Shown: positions 737 through 35,940 of the stretch, in pieces
Layout: each line of letters opens with the position of its first letter
How positions within the stretch are numbered: position 1 is the first letter of the stretch
Origin: Paragordius varius
Taxonomy: Eukaryota; Animalia; Nematomorpha
Length of the DNA: 64,000 bases
NCBI GenBank assembly: GCA_964247055.1
Contig: OZ176058.1
Coordinates: 2,356,001-2,420,000, forward strand
Direction of reading: 5' to 3'
Position numbers and translations under genes: made by a program
The notes under the pieces: model-generated
What the model saw: only the letters and a program-made list of their open reading frames with translations
What the model was told of the DNA's origin: nothing
The model's database searches: none

Positions 737-3700
737 TGAAATTTCGAGAACAAATGAATCAAGCAACATCCTTTATTGACGGATCCATTTTTTACGGTTC
801 CACCCAAGCTAAAGATCAAACCCTTAGAAGTTTTCAAAGAGGTAGGCATAGGCAAAAGTTTAGGTTTTTTTTCTTCGTAAAATTAAAGGATTTTTCCTAA
901 GTTTTATGGTGAAAATTTTATTAATTATTTTAAAATACAATAGCAATTCTTTGTTGTCTGGCAACATACCATATTATTAATAACTTTTTACCTATTAGTG
1001 GAATGCAAAAAAACTATTATTTTAGATTTTTGAATTGTCTAAATATAATTAATTATATATGAAATAAACATAAAAATGTTATAAAATCAGTTATAAAGTT
1101 TAGATTGCTTGTTTTTCATAAAATATTGTTGCCAGATAGCTTATTCTGCAAAGTGAAATATGATCGACTTAGGTATTTTTACACTTTTTACGATTATACG
1201 ACATTAATAATGCTCTTTGCTTTATATATATGGTTTTAGGCAATATTAAATGAAAAGCTAGGTATAATTATTTAATTCAAGGGTGTCCAACACAGCGAGG
1301 CGCGCCCTTGACATTGAGCATTAACAAATATTTAATTAAATTTTTAACATAAGACGCTAAAAACTACTATTTATTTTAACATTTTTTTGCTAGTTCATGG
1401 TCAAATTAAAAAAAATATACAGAAGTTGTTAAAAAAAATTTCTAGGTTTTATGCAAAATTTTGTATTTAAAATTTCTTGCGGGCTACAGAAAATTTTTGA
1501 AGGGTCATATGCGGCCCATAGGCAACTAGTTGAACACTTCTGAGTTGATTGTATCTCACTGAAAAAGTTACAATGGTATACGTTCGAAAAAAAAGATAAA
1601 AAAGCCTTAACTCACAAATAATAAATAAATTTTTGCTGTATATTAGGGCAATTGTTGAACACCCCTAGCCCAGTTCCACCCGAAGATAATAATGGACAAA
1701 CGGGCAAACCCTTACTTTTACTCATTAGAGATTCCAATTTGTGTCAAGGACAAGAAAAAAATTCAACTGGGTTATGCGTAGCTGCAGGTATTAACTGTAA
1801 AACTTTAATAACGTTTTTACAGTAAAAATAATATTTTTAATTTAAATTCTCGTGATGAATCTAGTATTAAATTGAACTCAGTAAAAATTTTCGATCATGG
1901 TTTATAAATATCAATGGTATATTCTGAATTGAACTACAGTAAAAATTGAAATTATACGCATGACAAAATGTATAAACCTAAAGACAAATTTTTTTTCAAA
2001 TGACAACCATAAATTTTCAAACTTAATTTTAAAAAACTCATCGTTTTAGATTGCAGTGTATGAAATATAGATGTAAATTGGTAAAACAATCAATTATATA
2101 TTTTACATTGTATTAGTTTATATGGGAAAAAATGGTTAAAAATATGGTTTTCCTTTCAAATGAATTTCGTCTTTATATTTTTCTGTGTCTGTATATTTAT
2201 AATTTTATTGTATATCAAAAACTTTCGATACATGATTGATAGAATCATTTCAATAAATATTTATTTAAAATTTTGGTTTTATTTGATATTTTATCAATAA
2301 AATTACTTTTGTTTTTTAATTCCTCCATTGAAAAAGATATTGCAGTGTATTAAGAATTTGAATATAATTCAATTAATTAAAATTTTTTAGAATTTAAATG
2401 ATTGTTGTTTTACATTTGATAATATCAATTTCAACTCATTTTTACAGTCATATTCAAAATAAAAATTATTAAAATGAATAGTAAAAACAAATATATTAAA
2501 AAATGGCCAAATTTTTTTAAACTATAGAGACAAAACATGAAAAGTAAAAACAAATGTTTTTGTCTTAAAACTACCATATATTTTTTGAACCCTGTTTTTA
2601 TATAGCATATCGTTTTTCGGTCTTTATGCTTTTATATTCTGTCTACATAATTTTTTTACTTTTTATGGTTTGTCTATTTTAATTATATAAACAAATCACA
2701 ATTTTTTGGCGGAAAACGCCATCTTTATAGTAATATGATTTATATATCTATAAAAAATGTAATAGGTGATCCTAGACCCAATGAGAATATTGGGCTAACC
2801 ATTTTACAGACTATAATGATGCGTGCCCACAATAGTATAGCAGATTCTTTAGCTGACTTGAATGTTCAATGGTCGGATGAACGCATTTTCCAGGAGACTA
2901 GGTAGAACTTTTATTAAAGTATTTTTGATATAAAAAATATTTGTCTATATGTTTTCACCCTTTATCCGTATAATTTCAATTTTTACTGTTTTTCATTGAG
3001 CTGTCAGACTTCCGAATCGAGGAGATATACATATTTGCATTCTTAACTATCTGTTTTTAAATGATGATAGAAAAATTTTGGGGGGTATATTTCAACACAT
3101 TACATACAATGAATACCTACCAATCATCCTGGGCCCAGAGACTATGGCAAATTTTCGATTAACTCTTAGCAATGAAGGTTACTTCCAAGGATATAATCCC
3201 GACACTGATGCAACGATAATTTCGGAATTTGCCACAGCAGCTTATAGATTTGGACATAGTCTAGTGCCCATTTCCATTAGTTTTTTGGATGAATTGTATA
3301 GGCCTGTGGCTGACCCTATCCTTATGAGAGATGTATGGGTTTTAAAATATTTTACCCAAAAAATTGAAATTAATTTTAATTTATGTATAAATAGTTATTT
3401 TATTTATGTTTATGACCTTTTTAAAAAATGAAAAGTACGATTTTCAGGTAAAATATAGTTAGTTGTCAGAAGTGGTTTACGCTTTTTAGGCTTTTTAGCT
3501 AACAAAAGGGCTTATATAACTGATTGTGTTATGATTTTAAAAATATGTTCATTTTATTCTTATTCTTTACTTTTAGAAGTGCTGAAATAACTGATGATAT
3601 TAATTTAGTAGACTTAAAGTGCATAGTCAGATAAAGAAATTAAACATAATTTGCTACATTGACATACGGTAAAAATTAATACTATACGGACAAAACGTAA

Positions 3701-6700
3701 AAATATAAAATATACTTTTTAGACGTGTTTCTTTATAACTTTTATTATTGATTGTTAGTATGAAATAGAGATGTATATTGGAAACACAATTAATTATGCA
3801 TTTTAGAATTATTTTGTAAAAAAAGAAAAAAGTTTGGTTGTCTCTTGAAAAATAACTAGCCTTTAAATTTTAACATTTGTCTGTATGATTAAAATTTTTA
3901 CTTTAGTCGTCGTATCATTCTAAAATTGAATCGTACGTTACTGAATATAGTCAAAAGCTGTTTTTACTTTATAGAGGAATATTTATATTTGGAATTTTGC
4001 TGACAAAAAAAGCTAAATAACGGATTGTACTATGTTTCTTAAAGTTAAATAGTTGTAGTATTAACATTTATTACATTTTATTTTTTGTAATTAATGATAT
4101 TTTGGGGTAGTTTTTACCCCAGGTGTAAGTACAAACTGTTTAAAATATTATTTGGTTAAAAGTTAATTATCAAACCCTCTACAAAACCTATAGTTACAGT
4201 TTTTTTAACTTGTACACTTCCGATTTCGGATCGCTCTAAAACACGATTTAAGCGAACAGCTGACATTTAAAATCCATAATTATGAAAAATTTGGTGGTTA
4301 ATTTAAATAGCTCTATAATTATTTTTTTATATTTTCCAACCATAATATACATTTATTTGCCCGTTAAAGCGATATTAAAAAATAAAGAAATAAAGTTGGC
4401 TGTCAAAAAATTTTCAGATAAGCATTTTAAAATTTCACATATGTTAACAAAATTTTTTTTTAAATCATGCGTTTAAGAAGCGAAAAACACTTTTTAAATT
4501 TGGCTTGATATAAATATTTTTTTAGGATAACCCAAAAGGTAATCAGGTGTTGATATTATATAACTAAATTCGCTTCTATTTACATACAACAAAAATTTAA
4601 ATTATATGAACTAGACGTAAAAATAGGAAAAATTTTTGATAAAAAAGACAGCCATATTTTTTTAACCTTAAATTTTCTTATATAAGATATTTACTTACCA
4701 TTGTAAAATATAACCATTATTGTTACCAATATACATCTCGATTTCATACTATTTGCAATTTTCACCAATGAGTGTTATTATAATTTAAATTGTCATTTAT
4801 AAAAAAAATATTTGTCTAAACCAAATTTTTACTGTATAACAAATTTAATAATTTTTTTTTGTTTAGGCAATGTTAAATCCCTTACTCCTATTTCAATTTT
4901 CTGGTTTTAATATGTTGGATGCCCTCCTAAGAGGGCTTATAACAGATCGGGCCGAAAAATTTGATCAAATACTAACGTCGGAACTTAGAAACCATTTGTT
5001 TGAATTGATAAATGCACAATTTGGTATGATTTAATTTTATAATATATTATATGTTACTATTTTTCTTAAATTTAAATTATTTTGTCCTTAAACTGTGATT
5101 CCAAAAAAATAAAAACGTAGATGTGACTCTAAATTTTTAATTCTAGATATTGAAAATTTTTCTTTAATTGTTTAATGCTAGGGTTTTCAACACAAATGGC
5201 TTTGCGGGCCGCATTGAAAATAGATAACAAATGTAGTTATATTTTATATATTTCAATCATGGCAGTGTAAAAAAATACGAACACGATATATCTACTAATA
5301 AAATATTTTAATTTTGTTTACTCTATTGGCAAAATTTGGAAAAATATTTTTAAAAATTTAATTTCAAATAAAGTCATTATATAAATTACAAGATAATTTT
5401 TTTATTTCTGAATTGTATATATATTTCGTTTTTTTTCGAAATTAGAGGGCTGCGTGTTAAACACCCCGGTTTGATGTATAAATTGGTTCTTTTATTTAGA
5501 CGAAAATTACAAACCTTCTAAAAATATATATATTTTACTTTTAGGTTTAGATTTGGCCGCTCTTAATGCCATGAGGGGTCGGGACCATGGGATTCCAGGC
5601 TACGTTCATTACAGAGATTTTTGTGGTCTTTCACCTGTTAGGACTTTTGATGATTTAGTCGGAGTTATACCAAACATTACTATTGGGGTAGTTTTTTTTA
5701 TATTTTTTATAAATTTTGAGTAAAGTCATAATTAAGTGACTGTCCACAAAAATATTTATCTTGTTTCAAAGGCAGTTTACTATATAATATTGATAAAGAT
5801 GTTATAGTTATTTGACACCTTTGCAGATATTTATATTTGCAAAATAAGTAATGGCAAAAAGGCGTACAATGATTTTAAGAAATAAAGAGTTAATTTATTT
5901 AATAAATATTTTCAGGATAAAGAAAAAAAAATATAACGAAATTAAATTTTCACATTTTTATATTTTTTTTTGATTTCGTTATAATTTTTTTATCCTGAAA
6001 TAGGTTATAAATATAACCGAAAATTAGATAGTTATTGAAAAAATTAACTATTAATTTGTTAAAAATTACACGTATTTGCCATTTCCTTTAAGTATATCCA
6101 AAATTTTATAAATTCTGCCCCACAAAAAAGAACTATTAAGGCCGCGGTTTGAGTACCACTGTTGTAATATATGTTTATATTTGCATTGGAAAGATAATTT
6201 GCCAATTAACCCGAACGGGAATTTATCCTTTGTAACTGTGATAATATGTTACAATGTCATTTAAGTATGTATGAATTACAGAGTATGCATATTTATGGTG
6301 ACCAATTTAGATTATAGTTGCACAGTATACCATTTACAATTCACATTCACCATTAAACAATTCAAATTCACCCTTGATCAATTATAATTCACCCTCGAAC
6401 AATTCGATTCACCCTAAAATAAATTATGTTTTTTTATGATTAAAAATTGCCTTTATTTTTATATAAAAAATAAAATTTTATTTCAAATTAAAATAATACT
6501 GAAAAAATAATAAATTATGCCATAAAGATATATTTTATCTTTTATAATGAGTTATATTAGTTCGAAAACACATAATTTATTTTTAGGGTGAATTTGAATT
6601 GTTTAAGGGTGAATATGAATTGTTCGAGGGTGAACTTGAATTGTTTAAGGGCGAATTTGAACTGTAAATGGTAAATTATATTTTATTATGTAAATAAACA

Positions 6701-9488
6701 ATAATTGTTAATATTAAGCAACTTTTTTTCCCATATTACGACTTAAGTTGTTTATTGATTAAGGGAAAAAATTGTTTTATAACACACACGCTACTGTATT
6801 ACTAATTGGCCAACAATAATGTGAATCTAAGTGCATAGTATATGATATAATAAATATTAAATCAAGGTAACTAAAGAGACCCTATATCAGCGATGTCCAA
6901 AACGCTTTTTTGGTACGGAAACTCTAAAAAATGTTTAAAAAGTAAAAATTTGAATTTCAATCAAACTTACAATTATATAGAAGTTATATCTTCCGTATTC
7001 GGACTCATAATAAATTAAGTAACATAAATATTTGAAACAATCACGAAAATTTTCACCCCTGCCTTATTTAAACAACAATAACACATATTTACAGATTGTT
7101 AGCCGGATATATGAACAGGTGGAAGATATGGACCTTTTTACCCTGGGCGTTTCGGAGTTTAGTGTACGAGGGGGAACAGTTGGTCCAACATTTGCTTGTA
7201 TTATAGCGAGACAATTTGCAAATCTTAAGGTGGGTGATGCCTACTGGTACGAAAATGGAAAACCGTTTAGGGTAAATTTTATTATATAAATTTGTTTCAA
7301 TTGCTTAAAAGTTTTTTTTACCTACAAAAGCTTTTTGATGTCCAATTTGTATCTTCTTAAATTTTAATGGTGATAAATATTAAACGCAAATGAAATATAG
7401 TTTAAATATATTCCCTTAGTTTTCATTAATGTATGGGTTTTTTTTCAATCTTATAATTAAAGATGATATTTTTTAATTATTTGCTTATATTTGCCAATTT
7501 TCAGATGTCTAAAATACTTACAAAAACTAGTAAGTTTATAAATTATTAAGCCTCATAATTACATTAAAAAATTCAGTAGCTTACAAAATAATCTAAAAAA
7601 GGGGGTTCATACTGCACATCTATATTAAAAATATACAGACAATCGTAAAAACATAAGGACAAATACTTTTTTAAAAAGACAACCATACCATTTTAAACCA
7701 TGACATTCCGCATATTAATTATTTAACTACAAAAACATTAATTTTGTTACCAATTTGCTATTTCATACTATTCAATCTAAAACGATAGATTAATGAATCA
7801 AGTTTAAAAGACTACAGCAATCTTGTTTTGTATATATAGTTTAAATTTTTAGTGCATTAAACTGGAATATGGATGTCTTTTTAAATCATATTTGTCATTT
7901 ACTTTTTACGTTTCGTCTGGATAACCTCAATTTTCTTTATTAAACCTCTATCTTTTATATTTTGTCTTTCTGTATAATTTTAATTTTTACTGCATAGATT
8001 TGGGTAATCGCTTTTTTTCAAAAATAAGTTTAGTCTGTATAATTTCCATTTTCACTGTATATAAAGGTATTTACAAGAGCGCAATTACGTGAGATACGGA
8101 AAATAACGTTGGCTAAACTAATTTGTACCCATGCGGATAACATAAGGACCATACATCCCCGCGTTATGGAAATCCCAGATGAACTAACGTATAATTTTAG
8201 CATTTTGCTTGTTTTTATATAAGAGAAGAGTTTATTCTACAAATGTTTTTTTAGATTGTTTAGAAAATAAAAAGTGTGGTTTCTACGTAAATTTTTACGA
8301 TGATTCCAAAATATTTTAGTTTTTAAAATGGTTATTAAATTAAAATAAATGAGTTATCTGCCAGCGAATTTATGTGGATTAAGCACTTTAGGATTTATAA
8401 AATTTAAATGGTGTTTTTATCATATCTTAAAGTTATATGGTTTTTAAAAATGCATAAATGGCTATAAAGGCAAATACTTAAGGAGAAAATATTTAAAAAT
8501 ATAATTTTTTTTATAGTTTAATTTAATTATCTCTAAATATCCCAAATAGAATAATTTTCCTTCATTTATATACATAGATTTATTTTTATGGTAATTTTAC
8601 CCTTGACATATATCTAAAAATTATTTATTTTGAATTTTAGTAATAAATTCTAAAGTTACATTTAACCGGTTATAAATGAATTTATAACTCAGACTCAGCG
8701 TAGACACGGTAACCATTCAAAAACCATTGTATAAATTTAAATCCTTTCTATAAAATGTGAGGATAAGACTTATTTTCATAGGACAACTAATTTTTAGTCC
8801 TGGACATTTTATGGTTTTTTCAAGATTAAGATTGGATACTAATTATATTTTATGAGTCGAGTTACCATAAAGTTTTTATATTTAATTAGAAAGGAAATAT
8901 TGTTTTTTCATAAAACTTAATCGCTTTACGCTTTGTTATGCCTTAATTTTAATTTAGAATTAATAAAGATACAATGAAAATGTTAAAATTATTTGATCAC
9001 ATCTTGATTGTATTTGGCATCCAAATGTGTTATTATTGACAGTATTAAATTAAGTTAAATTGGTTTTTTAAATTATTTAGAATAGATGTCTTTATTTGTG
9101 GTTATCATAAAATTATGAATTAACCGGCTATTTTTTAACCAGTCAAAAGCCAACCCCATTATCAAGACATACAATATATACAGTAAAAACTGAAATTTTT
9201 TTATAAAATTCCATCATACTTTTTTAAATCATTTAGTAATAGTAAAATTCTTAATTGATTGTGTTACCAATTTACACTTAATTTAAACAATTATTTAGTT
9301 ATAACTTTTAAAAATTTGTTAAAAAAATTTGACTAAAAAGATACATTTGCTTATTTAAGTTTTTTGCCTTATTATTTAAATTCTTAAAATTTTATGTTGT
9401 ACTATATATGATTTATAGAAACGCCTTCCTTGATTGCTCAACACTACCTGATATAGATCTTGGCCCATGGAAAGTTACAAGTAGTTGA
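737..9488 (+). CDS. Animal heme peroxidase (peroxidase-cyclooxygenase superfamily; chorion peroxidase/peroxinectin-like), last 9 exons; 5' part lies upstream of the window
   Basis: Phase-consistent GT-AG exons: 737-841, 1647-1787, 2766-2901, 3071-3332, 4867-5023, 5545-5687, 7095-7271, 8067-8188, 9419-9488 (TGA). Motifs: [27 protein letters not shown] (distal Arg and ester-forming Glu), [29 protein letters not shown] (proximal His), [46 protein letters not shown], final DLGPW. Confidence 0.95.
1278..1542. mobile_element. hAT-type MITE (CAGGGGTGTCCAAC-like ends); relatives at about 5178-5470 and 60313-60555; single ends near 6135-6162, 36040, 61513
   Basis: CAAGGGTGTCCAAC ... GCGGCCC...GTTGAACACTTCTG termini with GCGGGCCGC subterminal boxes. 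Confidence 0.6.
1935..2212. mobile_element. Tc1/mariner-type MITE with roughly 100-bp TIRs; representative of the most abundant family
   Basis: TA-CAGTAAAAATTGAAATTATACGGACAAAACG...GACAACCATAC arms. Whole or half copies at about 385-420, 685-725, 2520-2650, 2930-2992, 3660-3800, 4600-4840, 7625-7995, 8010-8060, 9889-10160, 15090-15230, 25234-25512, 50530-50780, 53252-53608, 56745-56910, 61020-61170, 61858-62680. Confidence 0.8.
6328..6673. mobile_element. Foldback-like MITE family B (21-bp unit GGGTGAATTTGAATTGTTTAA); decayed relative at about 11555-11800
   Basis: TACCATTTACAATTC ... GAACTGTAAATGGTA termini, inverted 21-bp arrays, same architecture as family A. Confidence 0.8.
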
Positions 9489-12050
9489 ATAGAACAAAAC
9501 TCTGCGCTATAAAAAAATATCCGCACAAAAATATTTAACATTTTTTTATTGTGATATATATTTAGCCTAGAATAGATTTATAATTATATTATTCATTTTA
9601 AAATAGATTAATTATACATTTATTAATTCCTTAGAAGTTTAAAATTATTATATGTATTTTTGAATACAAATATTTATATACTATATAATAAATTATTGTA
9701 AAAAATGATACACAAAATCTATTAAATAAATTAAGTTAACTTATGTCTTTCCTTCTATAGATGTGTGCACAATTTATATATTATGCAGTAAATTAAAATT
9801 ATAAAGACAGAACTTCTATAATAAATATTATTTTACAAAAAAACAAAAAACAGTAATTTCAACTATGCGGATAAAATGTAATAAAAAATACAGTAAAATT
9901 TGAAATTATACGGACGAAACGTAAAAATACATACACAAATAATAGTTTTTCAAAAAACAACCATACTTTTTTAAACCTTATTTTTTTATATGATTTATTT
10001 ACCTAAAAATATATAACATTGTGTTACCAATATACATCTCTATATCAACTTTGCAATTTAAATAATGCGTTATAAATTATAAAACATGGTTTAAAAAATA
10101 TGAATGTCTTCCAAAAAAATATTTATAATTTTTACATTTCCCTATATCAATTTACCTTAATACCATTTTTAATTTTAGATAGCATAAACCGCATTACACT
10201 AGAAAACAAATTTTAACTTTTTTTAACTGCCATTCTTTTAAATTTAAATTTATTTCATTAAAGTACATAATTAGTATATCTGAAAAGAAAATTGGTCTAG
10301 CATGGAAGAATTTTTTTATATTAGAGTTTATCGATAATTTTTGGCCCCGATTTAACATTAAACTCGAAATTTCGAAAATTAAAAGTTTAAGATATGAAGC
10401 CATGTATTTTATATCCTTCGAAAGAGCGCAAAATACTGAATCTTTTAAATGGTAGTCATTTAAATCAATCGGGTGTAAAAGTTATTTGGATTTAAATGGT
10501 CGAAATTTTCAATTCTTAAATAAGTCAAGAATTTTCACAGACAAACTAATTTGAAAATCATATAAATTATTTTAAAATAATTATTATGGTTATATTAATA
10601 TTTAATTGTAAAAAAATGTTTGAAAAAGCTTTTGGTTTTCTTTTTTAATAAAAATTATTATCATAAATATTTTACCTAGTGGATACTAAAATGCATAGTT
10701 ATAACTGTAAATTTAATACATAATAGCTATAAAAGATCAAAAATACCTTAAACTTTGTTTTTATCTTTAAAATTTCGAAATTATCAGCCTTCTAAAAAAA
10801 ATAATTTAATATTGATGAGATGGTAATTTTTAAAAAAACAAAAAACTTAAAAATGGTTGTTTTGAGTGACATAAAAGCAATAAAAAAATGTTTTAATCAA
10901 AAAAACTTTTTTGTGTTATCTTTTTTGGACATTGATCACCATCTAAACAAAGTTTGAGCTATTTTCATCCATTAGTTTTAAAAATATAATAATTAAAAAA
11001 AGCTCTCGCTTCGCGCGTTTGTCGCTCTTTGTGTCCAATATTAACTGTCGATGTAATACATATTAGTATGCATTTTATAGAGTTTTTATTACTCTTTCGA
11101 ATGATATATTACAAATGGGCATTACTTGTATATTTTCAAAGAAAAATATTTTTTAGTAAAATTTTGATAAAGAGGGCGCATAATCAAATAAATCAAATCA
11201 TACAAAATTCTTCCAACGAGTTAAATTTTTATTTCAGATTTACTGTTAAAATGATACTAAATATCAGAAAATTAAAAAACTCGAGTGGCAAAAAAATTTG
11301 TTGTCCAGTGTTATTAAATAATATCAAATTTTTAGCTATCGATTGATATATGATTAAACATTTATTGTTTTGTGCGCCGTGTCCAAGTATATAGAGTAAA
11401 ATTTAAATATGCATTAAGAACCAAGGAATATAATTTGAGTTATTTTGCCACTTTTCGATATGGATCTAATTCCAGAAAAGTCTAAATAAATTTGCTCTAT
11501 AACCGAAATCATATAATATCCGAATGCAGTTACTTAAAAATATTCATTACCATTTACATTTCGAATTCCCCTTAAACCTAAAAATAAATTATGTGTTATC
11601 CGGCTAATATAACTTATTATTAATATGAAATAAATTTTTACAATATAGTTTATTATTTTTCAATATTATATTGATTTAAACAGACTTTGTTATTCTATGA
11701 ATATTTAAAAAATAAAAGTAATTTTTATACTTAAAAAACTCATTATTTATTTTAGGTGAATTTGAAATGTTCGAAGGTGGATTTAAACTCTAAACGGTAA
11801 GTCATTCAAGATATTTGTTGTATGCACTCTGTATATTACCAAACTTTGAAACATACACCAAAGTATAAAATATTATTAATGCCATATGTAATTTATTATT
11901 ATGACTGAAAAAAAACTTAAATCACATATATAATTATGATGGTAAGGTTTTACAAAAAATAGGAATATAAAAAAACTATGTAGAGTTTACACATACATAA
12001 TTTTTTTGATAAACGGATAGTGTTAAGTGTCAAGTATAATGTTATTAAAA

Positions 12051-12858
12051 TTAGCCAAATATAGCGGAAATGAATCCAATGACAGTTCCCAGTTTTTCCC
12101 CGAACGTACGTTGATCAAATACTGATGTTGTTGTAGATGGTTGTTGACTAGGTTGATTTGTGGTAATTTCTTCATCAGGAAACATATCATTTGCAAATAT
12201 AGTATGACGTTTAACCCCATAAATCTCGAGAGGTTCATATATAGGGTCATCATAATCTTCATATCCAGAGTAACTTCGCCGATGTCTTTTTCTTTTTTCT
12301 TTATCGGCATCAACATGATTGATAGTATAGTTTTGATTTCTCCTGACAGGCAATAAAAATAATTGAGAAAAATTTAAAGTATGAGTAAGTGAATATTGTT
12401 TACAATATATTCTTGGGTTACAATTAATTATTATTTTCTACTATTATAACCATTTATATATCTCTTTACTGAAAATGCTATGTGGCAATACTAGAAATGT
12501 ATATTTACGCAACATACTGTTATATAAAAATTTAAGCACTCAATATATAATATAACAAAGGCAATTGTGTTTTTTAGTAACAATTCCACAAATTTAGAAC
12601 ATTCTGTTTTAAGTTTGGGAACCACGATCAGAGGTATGCAAAAATGTTAATCTTTTTACAATTAAATTACTTCAATTCGATTTTGACGATTTTAGAGTCC
12701 TCAGTATTGATCTTGTCATTTACGGAGAAAGTATTATTTCTTTTTTTTGGGTCCGATATACTGGCAGGAACTGACAAACCATGAATTATGGAAAATGCCA
12801 TAATGAATAGTAAAAATATCACAAAAATGTTTAAGCTTTTTTCACCAAACGCATTCAT
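12051..12858 (-). CDS. Small secreted prepropeptide, 159 aa, 2 exons (12858-12671, 12342-12051)
   Basis: ATG at 12858. Phase-2 intron GTAATT...CTGTCAG joins two ORF-track ORFs into 480 nt ending TAA. Hydrophobic signal peptide (NIFVIFLLFIMAFSIIHG), basic sites KKR, KR, RKRHRR, KR, then C-terminal TFGEKLGTVIGFISAIFG. Confidence 0.85.
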
Positions 12859-12961: not shown

Positions 12962-12970
12962 CTTTATATA
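12962..12970 (-). promoter_or_regulatory. Possible TATA box of the prepropeptide gene
   Basis: TATATAAAG on the minus strand about 105 bp upstream of the ATG; weak evidence in such AT-rich DNA. Confidence 0.3.
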
Positions 12971-15918: not shown

Positions 15919-18900
15919 CGTATCGTCTTTGTGTAATGGCTAGCCATTGTATCCGTATAGAAGCTGTCTGTAATATTTGCGATCCTGCCAGGCGTTATCA
16001 TCAATGTTGGCAACACTTAAATCATTATTTATTGTTTTTTCCCAGTTGAATGTTGGTCTGCCCCTGCGATTGTTACCTTCGGGATGTAGGGATAAAATTT
16101 TATTTGTCCATTGTTCTGGAGCACGTTTGATGTGTCCGAAATATCTGAGCCTATTTTTTCTGAGCATGACATTTAAAGGTTCAATTTGGTAGAGTTGATG
16201 TAAATTTGAATTTGACTTATTGGGTTGGAATAAATTTAGTATCCGTTTTTCTAAGTTCATTAGTTTTTTCTCGATTGAATCTGTCATCGGCCACGTTTCG
16301 CAACCATACAGGAGTATGGGACGTATGCCGGCTTTGTAAATCAAACCTTTGTTTTTTGCTGATATGTGTTTATTTTTGAGGACAAATTTAAGTTGATGAT
16401 ATTTTACCCAAGCCTGTTGGGATCTATATTTAACTGATTGGTTTATTCCACCTAGGCAATGTATGACATCACCCAGGTATTTGAAATTTTCACCAATTCG
16501 ATTTTGGTGTCTGCCATATAAACGTAATTTAGGGAAGTGGATGAGTGATTTATTGTTTTATTTTTACATGATTCACATATAAATTTGTCATTATTGATTA
16601 GTTTCCCTTTTATAAGCGAGCACTTTTTGTGTACCCACTTATTGCATGATGTACATAGGATTGAATTGAGTTTAACATCTAAATCACATACTCCACATGG
16701 GAACTTAGGTCGTTTATATACAGTTTCACCCGTTATCATTACCTTTGTTTTGCTTATATTTATATTCATTCCACCCTTTTCTAAGTGTGATTTCCATGTG
16801 TTGTACTTTTGATTTAATGCTTCCATTGATGTTGCGGTGAGGACAATGTCGTCCGCATAGATAAGTTCCCATGGTGGGCCTTGTTTTATATCTTTTGTTA
16901 GGTAATCCATTTAAAATGAAGAGTAGAGGGCTTAGGATGGAGCCTTGATGAAGACCAGATTCGTTTGGAACAAAAGCTGTGTTACCTAGTGTTAATCTGA
17001 CGCAGTTTGTTGTTTTGTAGTACATCATTTCTATTGATTTAATTATCCAATCATCTACATTATTGGCTCGTAGTGTGGATGTGATCAACTTCCTGGGGAT
17101 ACAATCAAAGGCCCTTTGTAAATCAATAAAAACATGATATAGTTTTTTATTTTTCGCTAAATAGTTCTCTTGCAATCTTCTCAAAATGAAGATTGCATCA
17201 ATTGTGCTACTGTTTGGTTTATAGGCATATTGTGATTCCTGTATACTAACGATTGATCTTAGTTTTGATTCAATAATGGATTCAAAAATTTTTAACGGGT
17301 GTTCCAATAACTTTAGTGGTCTGTAGGAGGAGCAAACTAGTATGTCTCCTTTGTTTTTATAAATGGGTATGATGGTGCTTTTTGACCAATCATTAGGGAT
17401 GCGATTTGTTGATAAGATTAGATTGAATATGTTAGTTAAATGTATAATGCATTGTGGTAAAGCTTTGATCATGTCACAGCTGAGTTCAGATGGACCTGTG
17501 GCTTTATTATTTTTCATCTTGACCAAGGCTTCTCTTACATCGTCTGTTGTTATCAATGGTCAAGGACCAATTACTGGTGGTTGGTTTATTGTTTCAAAAT
17601 CATGTTTTTGTGCAAATTGTTCTTTGTAATACGTTGTCCAGACATTGCTTATGTCACTCCACTCAGTTACTAGTTGTTGATCTTTATCTTTAATATAGGA
17701 AATTTGTTTAATGTCCTTTTTATTATTGTTAACTGAATTTATTGTTCGAAAAATCTTAAGATTTTTCATGTCTTGTTCTAATTTTTTAGCTAAATCCAAA
17801 GCTTTTTTGTTGGCTGAAATATTGATGGCTTGTTGTAAATTTTTATTTGATTTGATATATGATTCCAAGTCTCTTTTATCTTTTGTTTGTTTCCATCTTT
17901 TATAGTTATTGCGTTTAATTACAATTAAAGGTTTTATGGATTCTGACCACCACAAATTTGATTGTTGTTTTTTCCTGTATATTTTCTTTCTCCCAAGCTT
18001 GTTCAGATGTTTTGTGGTTGAGGCTAAGCGATGCATTGACAGTTTCTGAGAGTTGAAGTTTAAGATCAGGAAGGTGTAATTTTTCTAAGTTTATTTTAGG
18101 TTTCTGGTTACTATGGTAATAGGATTTGTTTATTGTTATTATAGCTACAATTAATTTATGTTGCGTGTCAGTAAGGTATGTTTTAGAGTCTTTAATGAAT
18201 TTTCTATCTTGAATGGGTGTTAAAATGTAGTCTACCATAGAATTTTGATTACCACTTGTATAAGTTATTAATTTCTTTGCTGGTTTCGTGAAGAGGGTAT
18301 TGCAGATAGTAAGTCTAAGAGATGCGCAGTATTCTAATAATGTATCACCTTCTTTGTTACGGCTGCCAAAAGCGTTTCCTCCATGTATTCTCATATAGTC
18401 TTCACCATTAGTGCCAACGTGGGAATTGAAATCTCCTATAAAAATTTTGTCATTTGGAGGTATTGCATGGGAAATGTCGTATAGTTGGTTCCAAAAGGCT
18501 TGTTTGGTTGCTTCGCTTAATCCAGACTGGGGAGCATAGATGGAAAATATGTTAAGAATTTGTTTTTTAAAGCCGATACGTATTTGGATAATTCTTTCGT
18601 TGTGTCTGTTTACTTCTATTATATTATCACAATATTCATTTTTAATAGCTATAGCCACTCCATGTTGGCCTTTCATTTGACCTTTGTAGAAAATTGTATA
18701 GTTGTCTATATTCAGCTTTCCCTCAGATTTATATCTTGTTTCCTGGAGGCAACAGATGTCAATGTTTTTCTCTTTTATTTGGTCGATAACTAAGTTTGAT
18801 CTACCGACTAGCGTCGAGATATTCCAAGTGCCGATCTTAAGTGGTTTTACCATATTGTTGGGTGTTTTTTGATGTTTGTGGTTTTTTAGGAGAGCATTAA

Positions 18901-19392
18901 TATTGTTATCATGTAAATTAATATTATTATCAAAATTAAGATTATCACATATATTAATATCATTAATAAAATTATTTGTAAGATTAATATTATCATTTTT
19001 AAAATATATATCATTGTTTAAAAGTGTTGTCAATTCATTCATTATTTTCATATACGGTATGATTAAGGCGATTGTTTTACAATTTGCATGCCTTTGCAAA
19101 TCAAGAGACTATTTCGGTGTCCCTGACCTATGAAATTGCCTTTCTGGGCTTACGGAGTTCCATCCCCGCTTGCATATATTACAAATTGGTTGTTTCTAGC
19201 AACTGGTTATAGCGCCAGATAAACCCGCTTTATCATCTGTGTGAATGCAGGTATTGTGGTATTTTATAGGAAAAAATAATGGTAGTTTATTTTTTCCACC
19301 ACACCCCACACAGATGATTTCTTTCCTTTGCCGCTCCCGTTGGTATTAACCAGGGTGCACCACGCGGAGGTGGGAGTCGGACTTTGCACCCC
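15919..19392 (-). mobile_element. Full-length RTE-clade non-LTR retrotransposon (APE endonuclease + RT), single ORF disrupted by a few lesions
   Basis: 13-bp TSD CAATTTTAAATTA at 15906-15918 and 19393-19405. APE motifs KIGTWNI, LQETR, IYAPQ, GDFNSHVG, VDYIL; RT motifs KATGPS, YRPLKLL, FIDLQRAFD, GLHQGSILSPLLF, YADD, FKYLG, LLYGCETW, RLRYFGH, RGRP. Lesions: deletion/frameshift near 17980, in-frame TGA 17560-17562, frameshifts near 16912 and 16490. Confidence 0.95.
19331..19392 (-). ncRNA. HDV-like self-cleaving ribozyme at the LINE 5' end
   Basis: Minus strand: P1 GGGGUGC / GCACCCU (G1-U wobble), J1/2 AAAGU, P2 CCG(A)CUCCC / GGGAGCGG, P3 ACC / GGU, L3 UCCGCGU, P1.1 CC / GG, J4/2 CCAAC (CNRA). 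G1 = 19392, the first base after the TSD. Confidence 0.85.
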
Positions 19393-35039: not shown

Positions 35040-35940
35040 GTAAAGAGGGTAATCGAGAGGCAAAGCAATGGCAAACCACCCTCGTTTTTTTATTGCCAAA
35101 AAATTGTTACACTTGCAATTGACGCACCCATTTAAAATCGGATGCTGGAACGTACGTTCCTTAACAGAAACCAAACAGGTATTAATTGAAAGAGAAATGG
35201 AAGATTGAAATTAAATATACTGGGTTTAACGGAAAAGCAAAAAGGTAGCGCAAAAGCACAAAATGAAAAATATACATTGTTAAGATCGGGGAGAGATGAC
35301 CAGAAATCAGAAGGCGTTGCGGTATTAATAAATGACCATTAAATAAAAGTCATATTAGTTGTACAGCATACACACCCAGAAACATGAATATTAGGCTGAA
35401 TGCTAAGTCACTTAAATTTACATACATAGTAGTCTATGCTCCTACGTCAAACGCTCCTAAAGAAGACATAGAGGATTTTTATGGAAAGTTGCGAATGCTT
35501 TTGAAAGAAATGAAGAAAGAAGATATGATTATCATAGGAGGTGTTTGAAACAGCAAAGTTGTAGAGGTAGAATAGATCAAATAGTCGGGCCATATGGATT
35601 AAGACAATGAAACGGGGAAGGCATTGATCAATTTTGCCAGGAAATCGAGATTATGGTAACCAACACATGGTTTCCACAACACAATAGGAGGCTAGACACA
35701 TGGACCTGGCCATGTGGCAAATGTAAAAATCAAATCGATTATATAATATGTCCACAAAAAGGGAAAAGCTCAATACTCGATACAAAAACAAGCAAAGGCA
35801 GTGATTACTCTAGCGATCATGAGCTTTTTATAACAAAAATCAAACTTAAAATCATTAAAAATGATGTTAGACATACAGAAATACCCGGAACATTCCAAAT
35901 AATTTTAGATCAGAAGCAAAAGATTGATTAAAATAGATTA
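35040..35940 (+). mobile_element. Degenerate BovB-like RTE LINE, 5' region + APE endonuclease half, opposite orientation to the RT half
   Basis: GCAATGGCAAACCACC RTE-type motif, LKIGCWNVRS, VVYAPTS, NTWFPQHNRRLDTWTWP...KNQIDYI, SDHELFITKIKLK. Confidence 0.75.

Follow-up and report, generated by a model that had tools for sequence, protein, structure and literature searches.

The window analysed here, the whole 64-kb stretch of DNA from the nematomorph Paragordius varius, is eukaryotic DNA of 25% GC, and its minus strand holds at 12051-12858 a candidate gene for a small secretory protein. An earlier note had read this interval as a precursor composed of a signal peptide, a pro-region, a furin-type site, a Tyr-rich segment, a dibasic site, an acidic Ser/Thr-rich spacer and a hydrophobic end closing on Gly and a stop; frame and residue order were re-read, and the layout matches the minus-strand letters. 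The coding parts of 188 and 292 nt add up to 480 nt, that is, 159 codons and a stop, and the two-exon gene is probably real, if unproven. Its elements, in the direction of transcription, are as follows.

12962..12970, minus strand: TATA-like box TATATAAAG, 112 nt upstream of the ATG
12671..12858, minus strand: coding part of exon 1, 188 nt, from the ATG at 12858-12856 (Met1) through the second base of the K63 codon
12343..12670, minus strand: intron, 328 nt, GT-AG, phase 2, GTAATT...TGTCAG
12051..12342, minus strand: coding part of exon 2, 292 nt including the TAA at 12053-12051, from the third base of that codon through G159
11892..11897, minus strand: AATAAA polyadenylation-like signal, 153 nt after the stop

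Gene model and surroundings

The splice sites read AA/GTAATT at the donor and TTATTGCCTGTCAG/G at the acceptor (slashes mark junctions and, below, cleavage points), so that the K63 codon is split AA/G across the junction and the exons join in frame. Exon 1 encodes a signal-peptide-like N-terminus, the basic triplet KKR at residues 38-40 and a polar pro-region with an N-glycosylation sequon at N41, one of two sequons in the 159-residue protein. The product has no Cys and no Trp, and besides the furin motif RHRR/S it contains four further dibasic sites, among them the pair KR 63-64 in the pro-region.

Signals flanking the coding parts are of a kind that this DNA readily supplies. An initiator-like TCA lies at 12942-12940, its A 30 nt downstream of the TATA-like box; the same composite stands 60-200 nt upstream of 6% of arbitrary ATGs of the window and is thus weak support for a promoter. 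Likewise, the AATAAA hexamer is frequent by chance in DNA of 25% GC and therefore only weakly supports the 3' end. Two stretches could be spliced differently. Inside exon 1, a 24-nt segment at 12700-12723 (minus strand; GTAAAT...CTGAG) preserves the frame and has no stop, and its removal would take away eight pro-region residues (VNDKINTE) with no other effect. At 12104-12109 (minus strand), GTACGT over the R141 codon is a possible alternative donor whose use would drop the hydrophobic tail; no coding-like exon was found downstream of it.

Convergent with the candidate, exons of an animal haem peroxidase gene occupy 3078-7289 on the plus strand (PF03098, E=1e-21 for exon 3078-3431), about 4.6 kb from the candidate's predicted poly(A) signal. 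On its other side, a non-LTR retrotransposon lies at 15940-19108 (minus strand), with overlapping open reading frames (ORFs) that by eye are endonuclease- and reverse-transcriptase-like and that appear frameshifted into several ORFs. A plus-strand ORF at 35611-35931 (GC 0.35), by eye like the end of an APE-type endonuclease, is probably a retrotransposon fragment. Scans of the window for tRNAs and Rfam families gave no matches, and no local repeats relevant to the locus were found.

Coding evidence

The case for a gene is carried mainly by exon 2. GC content is 0.21 in the flanks, 0.24 in the intron, 0.31 in exon 1 and 0.35 in exon 2, where it declines across codon positions in the order GC1>GC2>GC3 (0.41/0.33/0.27). 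A codon log-likelihood model was trained by setting 19 uninterrupted kinase exons of this genome, 4,079 codons in all, against the intergenic DNA of the window; by this measure exon 2 scores +0.184 bits/codon, real exons of the genome scoring 0.19 +/- 0.07. Its frame is the highest-scoring of the six, exceeds the 95th percentile of real junk ORFs and stands 5 SD above chance ORFs of at least 90 codons. Given its own composition, the probability of an open frame is 0.0007 under dinucleotide shuffling, and the off-frame stop triplets all fall in one frame (12/12), a strong three-base periodicity. Exon 1, at -0.05 bits/codon, is uninformative and taken alone does not look coding.

A mechanical model search looked for pairs of ORFs, the first with an ATG and a signal-like start, the second coding-like and of at least 90 codons, with a GT-AG intron that joins them in phase. 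From the 64-kb window it returned this model only, with exactly this junction, and from 15 Mb of simulated DNA no comparable two-exon model at all. Among 1,586 simulated ORFs of at least 90 codons, none combined an acceptor with a codon score of at least 0.15, and the top score among 832 further simulated ORFs was 0.029, as against 0.184 for exon 2. Within 7.5-15.9 kb exon 2 has the best coding score and there is no other coding-like ORF, so the locus appears to be a self-contained two-exon unit.

It is possible to suppose that no functional gene exists here and that pattern-seeking over 1,667 windows picked out of AT-rich DNA an open frame that arose by chance or is decaying. Markov-3 simulations do yield stop-to-stop ORFs of at least 97 codons, about 4.5 for every 60 kb; AATAAA, TATA boxes and N-termini that look like signals turn up often by chance in this DNA; exon 1 is not coding-like; and neither homologues nor paralogues were found (see below). 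Against this stand the codon score of exon 2, far beyond the simulated maxima, the improbability of its open frame together with the periodicity of its stop triplets, its top rank within 7.5-15.9 kb, and a canonical splice junction, the only one of its kind in the window, that connects it in phase with an ATG ORF whose start is cleanly signal-like. We consider the absence of a gene rather improbable and a real gene at the locus very likely, the doubt that is left coming from the look-elsewhere effect and from the greater patchiness of real genomes compared with simulated DNA.

Relatives and copy number

Homology searches were carried out exon by exon and structure prediction on exon 2, and the joined 159-residue chain was used for numbering and property counts. 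The absence of a recognised family, as first reported, is borne out by the searches with both exons, which yielded no credible relative. For exon 2 there were no word-sharing protein candidates, no Pfam match and no usable match in the ESM Atlas; HMMER against 1.84 billion representative proteins gave a single match at E=9e-4, to a 512-residue repeat protein that is unlike the candidate in layout and composition and that we regard as spurious. A match of exon 1 to a bacteriocin-like Pfam family at E=0.31 is meaningless, and PDB sequences gave no match. Within the 110.6-Mb assembly, exon 1 and exon 2 (six-frame translated searches) and the whole locus (DNA search) match only themselves, which answers the question of paralogues raised at the outset. 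No literature was found on nematomorph peptide precursors or secreted effectors of such a kind. As far as these searches reach, the predicted gene is lineage-restricted, single-copy, without credible homologue and of no known family.

How much the absence of relatives means can be gauged from a conserved gene of the same genome. When a single-exon ULK3-like kinase (628 residues; L011:424-2307 on G000:C3, minus strand) was used as query, the best match came from Gordionus sp. (Nematomorpha) at 40% identity and 89% coverage, and none of the other matches, mostly from arthropods, extended over more than about two-thirds of the query, the majority covering 54-56%. The query found no copy of itself, so proteins of Paragordius varius are absent from the protein collections. 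With the nearest annotated species only 40% identical in a conserved kinase, the absence of relatives carries little weight.

Two further features of the assembly were noted in passing. At kinase loci such as L016, L021, L026 and L033, many matches to Pkinase run across 1-11 stops in frame, for the most part TAA; these fall within otherwise continuous Pkinase domain alignments, which is consistent with very short introns. Published nematomorph genomes are 200-300 Mb in size (preprint 10.1101/2024.06.11.598342), compared with 110.6 Mb for the assembly used here.

Predicted secretory entry and processing sites

Translated, the candidate divides into the following predicted segments, which are listed from the N-terminus.

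12763..12858, minus strand: predicted signal peptide, residues 1 to ~32, by hydropathy and the (-3,-1) small-residue rule
12276..12293, minus strand: polybasic site R80-K-R-H-R-R85, holding the furin consensus R-X-K/R-R (RHRR/S)
12213..12275, minus strand: acidic Tyr-rich 21-mer, residues 86-106, net charge -6, five Tyr
12207..12212, minus strand: dibasic K107-R108, with Gly at P4
12108..12206, minus strand: acidic Ser/Thr/Pro/Gln-rich linker, residues 109-141, net charge -4, predicted disordered, ending in the lone R141
12054..12107, minus strand: C-terminal 17-mer (residues 142-158) plus G159, predicted helix

The N-terminus has an uncharged hydrophobic core at residues 9-25, with a hydropathy peak of 3.4 at residues 11-21, followed by small residues at 27-33 that offer candidate cleavage sites after G27, S29 or A32. 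In agreement with the signal peptide proposed initially, it passes a crude rule (uncharged core, small residues at -3 and -1, polar stretch after) that only 4.5% of the ATG ORFs of the window pass (6/134). Hydrophobic N-termini as such are frequent by chance in this DNA.

A resemblance between the two ends of the protein was also seen. The N-terminal FGEKS and the hydrophobic run after it (12843-12805, minus strand) are similar to the C-terminal FGEK and its hydrophobic run (12104-12069, minus strand), with a local alignment score of 23 that 3% of shuffles equal or beat in a test made post hoc; at the DNA level there is no repeat between the two regions. The C-terminal tail could be a relic of a duplication of the signal region or the likeness could be due to chance, and neither origin is proven.

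Further along, the basic run KRKRHRR spans residues 79-85, its last four residues (82-85) giving the motif RHRR/S. AlphaFold2, applied to exon 2 alone and without an alignment, predicted no secondary structure besides one C-terminal helix, and the polybasic and dibasic sites, since they lie in the predicted disordered chain, would be accessible to proteases. With the motif present, in predicted disorder and with convertase exons elsewhere in the genome, the putative furin-type site of the original description stands. The dibasic K107-R108 would be of PC1/PC2 type rather than furin type, given the Gly at P4. It should be borne in mind that a genome of 25% GC, with its A-rich DNA, readily produces basic pairs through AAA/AGA codons.

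Between these two sites lies the acidic segment, whose five tyrosines fall within 18 residues. Y90, Y93 and Y98 each have four acidic and no more than one basic residue within five positions, and Y93 has Asp at -1. The suggestion that this segment offers a context for tyrosine sulfation is thus upheld for three residues by the usual rule of thumb, and a TPST-like gene is present.

Modifying enzymes in the genome

Exons with the P_proprotein domain (P-domain convertase) were found on C4 and C3. Cu2_monoox_C exons lie at G000:C4:12375554, and among solved structures their best matches are without exception PAM/PHM (E=1e-9); the PF01082 profile had no match in the genome, and this domain may be split into small exons. 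An exon at G000:C10:974063-974212 matches the structures of TPST2 and TPST1 (E=1e-22). On the side of lipid anchoring, there are Gpi16/PIG-T exons (E=2e-15) and a Peptidase_C13 exon (E=3e-12) for which GPI transamidase and legumain are both possible. Convertase, PHM-like, TPST-like and GPI-transamidase genes being present, every modification discussed below is possible in this animal.

The C-terminal tail

The single helix predicted by AlphaFold2 covers precursor residues 140-158 (pLDDT about 88). Its last part is strongly hydrophobic: residues 147-159 form a run of 13 uncharged residues to the C-terminus, with a Kyte-Doolittle mean of about 2.0. Several details of the first description hold here, namely the Gly residues at positions 3, 7 and 11 of the 17-mer and the position of G159 as the last codon before the TAA, where it could serve as an amidation donor. 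For its amphipathic, antimicrobial-like character the support is weak. A helix is indeed predicted, and the hydrophobic moment of the 17-mer, 0.35 at 100 degrees with a mean hydrophobicity of 0.55, is modest and is reached by 4% of permutations (p=0.04); the side-chain net charge, however, is 0, from one Glu and one Lys, and would amount to +1 at most in an amidated form with a free amino terminus. The 17-mer thus lacks the net positive charge of linear cationic antimicrobial peptides. An uncharged and very hydrophobic terminal peptide is out of the ordinary among neuropeptides, as it is among cationic defence peptides.

Separate release of the 17-mer as an amide, as originally proposed, is weakly supported. 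It would need a cut after the lone R141; known monobasic cleavage sites have a basic residue at P4, P6 or P8, and R141 has F, S and T at these positions. A cleavage site directly before an amidated product is found only for the 50-residue piece that starts after KR108. If the gene is real, we regard the liberation of the 17-mer as the least likely step of the whole scheme, and an improbable one.

Possible readings of the protein

Our leading reading, which we hold tentatively, is that a lineage-restricted two-exon gene encodes a 159-residue, Cys-free and almost wholly disordered secretory protein that acts as a convertase-processed precursor. The signal peptide would direct it into the ER and be removed at about residues 27-33; in the Golgi, a TPST-like enzyme would sulfate tyrosines 90, 93 and 98; a furin-type convertase would cut after RKRHRR85. 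In cells with PC1/PC2-type enzymes a cut at KR108 as well may be expected. Together, these cuts would set free two products, the 21-mer with its acidic, Tyr-rich sequence and a C-terminal piece of 50 residues (109-158). The latter ends in a 19-residue, presumably membrane-seeking helix, and its terminal Gly would be converted to an amide. We infer expression, all cleavages, sulfation and amidation from the sequence. The earlier idea of a multi-peptide precursor survives in so far as a secretory protein with furin, dibasic, Tyr and Gly features is predicted; it does not extend to release of the 17-mer, and a membrane anchor is about as likely.

Such an anchor is the basis of the first rival reading, a mini-mucin whose tail would be a GPI-attachment signal or a membrane-embedding helix and would yield no peptide product. 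A furin cut at RKRHRR85 would then leave a sulfated acidic Tyr N-terminus on a Ser/Thr/Pro/Gln stalk, lipid-anchored at the cell surface, where for a parasite it could serve as a surface coat or in host interaction. The earlier note had held that a clear match to a membrane-anchored protein would speak against a precursor; no match to a known family was found, and the sequence design fits a GPI-anchored or membrane-associated protein equally well. Consistent with this are the signal-like N-terminus, the polar disordered Ser/Thr-rich linker at 121-136 followed by a charged spacer and the uncharged 13-residue tail to the last residue, the two N-glycosylation sequons, the triplet S132-T-T as small omega, omega+1 and omega+2 residues, from which a signal of 27 residues, a usual length, would follow, and the Gpi16/PIG-T and Peptidase_C13 components in the genome; moreover KR108, with no Arg at P4, need not be cut in constitutive secretory cells. 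By inspection, however, the omega region is non-canonical: S132 would bring Thr at omega+2 and a 12-residue spacer, and S136 as omega would put Val and Phe at omega+1 and omega+2, which is unfavourable. The tail is also short for such a signal, at 13 residues, and includes three Gly, one Thr and one Ser, and a processed precursor better explains the terminal Gly and the number of basic sites. Overall, we consider the anchored form somewhat unlikely.

A different proposal does without peptide products or anchor altogether and sees a secreted, disordered acidic protein, unprocessed or only furin-trimmed, that might form part of a matrix or cuticle with cross-linked tyrosines or act as a granin-like sorting helper, its C-terminal helix mediating self-association or transient membrane binding. 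Predicted disorder apart from one helix and the cluster of tyrosines would suit it, as would a haem peroxidase gene as convergent neighbour, adjacency being no functional evidence. Nothing specific speaks for this reading, matrix proteins are usually repetitive or larger, and the reading would leave the furin and dibasic sites and the terminal Gly alike to coincidence; we think it distinctly unlikely. As between the first two readings, the C-terminal Gly and the closely set basic sites speak for a precursor that is processed and amidated, whereas the hydrophobicity of the tail and the stalk favour an anchor, and in a rough weighing of likelihoods the two come out about even.

Significance

Horsehair worms are parasites known for manipulating their hosts. 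The boldest version of the precursor reading would have the orphan gene release two products of opposite chemistry, one an acidic Tyr peptide with several sulfates, the other a hydrophobic, membrane-active helix that is amidated, both secreted into the arthropod host. If true, this two-product effector could interfere with protease cascades of the host haemolymph or with cell membranes, and its precursor would represent a new family of effector or defence peptides without relatives; we judge this very improbable. From a more sober standpoint, the candidate, taken as an orphan small secretory protein, belongs to a commonplace type and bears on no long-standing question. If expressed, it would be one more lineage-restricted secreted product for a very poorly studied animal group, and its candidate products are small enough for synthesis and testing. 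In practice it is chiefly of use as one item in a catalogue of small secreted genes that lack annotation.

Comparison with known systems

Among ecdysozoan neuropeptide and peptide-hormone precursors, the candidate finds likeness in its predicted signal, several dibasic sites, acidic spacers and C-terminal Gly, and in the presence of an amidating enzyme in the genome; it differs in having no internal G-K/R-R amidation sites. To our knowledge, the predicted terminal peptide matches no peptide family, and it is far more hydrophobic than the neuropeptides known to us.

PSGL-1-type ligands and hirudin-like tails offer another parallel, in that removal of the propeptide at the polybasic site would expose an acidic, multi-Tyr N-terminus; a Ser/Thr/Pro-rich stalk and then a hydrophobic C-terminal element follow. 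The candidate differs in its small size (159 residues), in lacking repeats, a cytoplasmic tail and a true transmembrane span, and in the KR pair that separates the stalk from the Tyr cluster; homology is absent. The nearest relative makes the animal a parasite of arthropods, so the likeness to PSGL-1 and hirudin does not imply a vertebrate target.

With GPI-anchored mucin-like proteins (those with CD59-type signals and parasite mucins) the candidate shares an N-terminal signal, a Ser/Thr-rich linker, a charged spacer and an uncharged tail to the C-terminus; the putative GPI-attachment signal would measure about 27 residues. It departs from them in the non-canonical omega+2 residue, in the short, Gly-containing tail and in the internal furin and dibasic sites.

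A parallel to the peptide product proposed at the outset is offered by the frog temporin and aurein precursors and by promelittin. Honeybee promelittin ends in Gly and a stop. All of these have, as the candidate is predicted to have, a signal, an acidic spacer and a short C-terminal hydrophobic helix with Gly as the last residue. The candidate differs from them in presenting a lone Arg and no dibasic site directly before the terminal peptide, in a net charge of 0 rather than a positive one, and in the second, acidic Tyr-rich peptide that lies between basic sites; in sequence there is no similarity.
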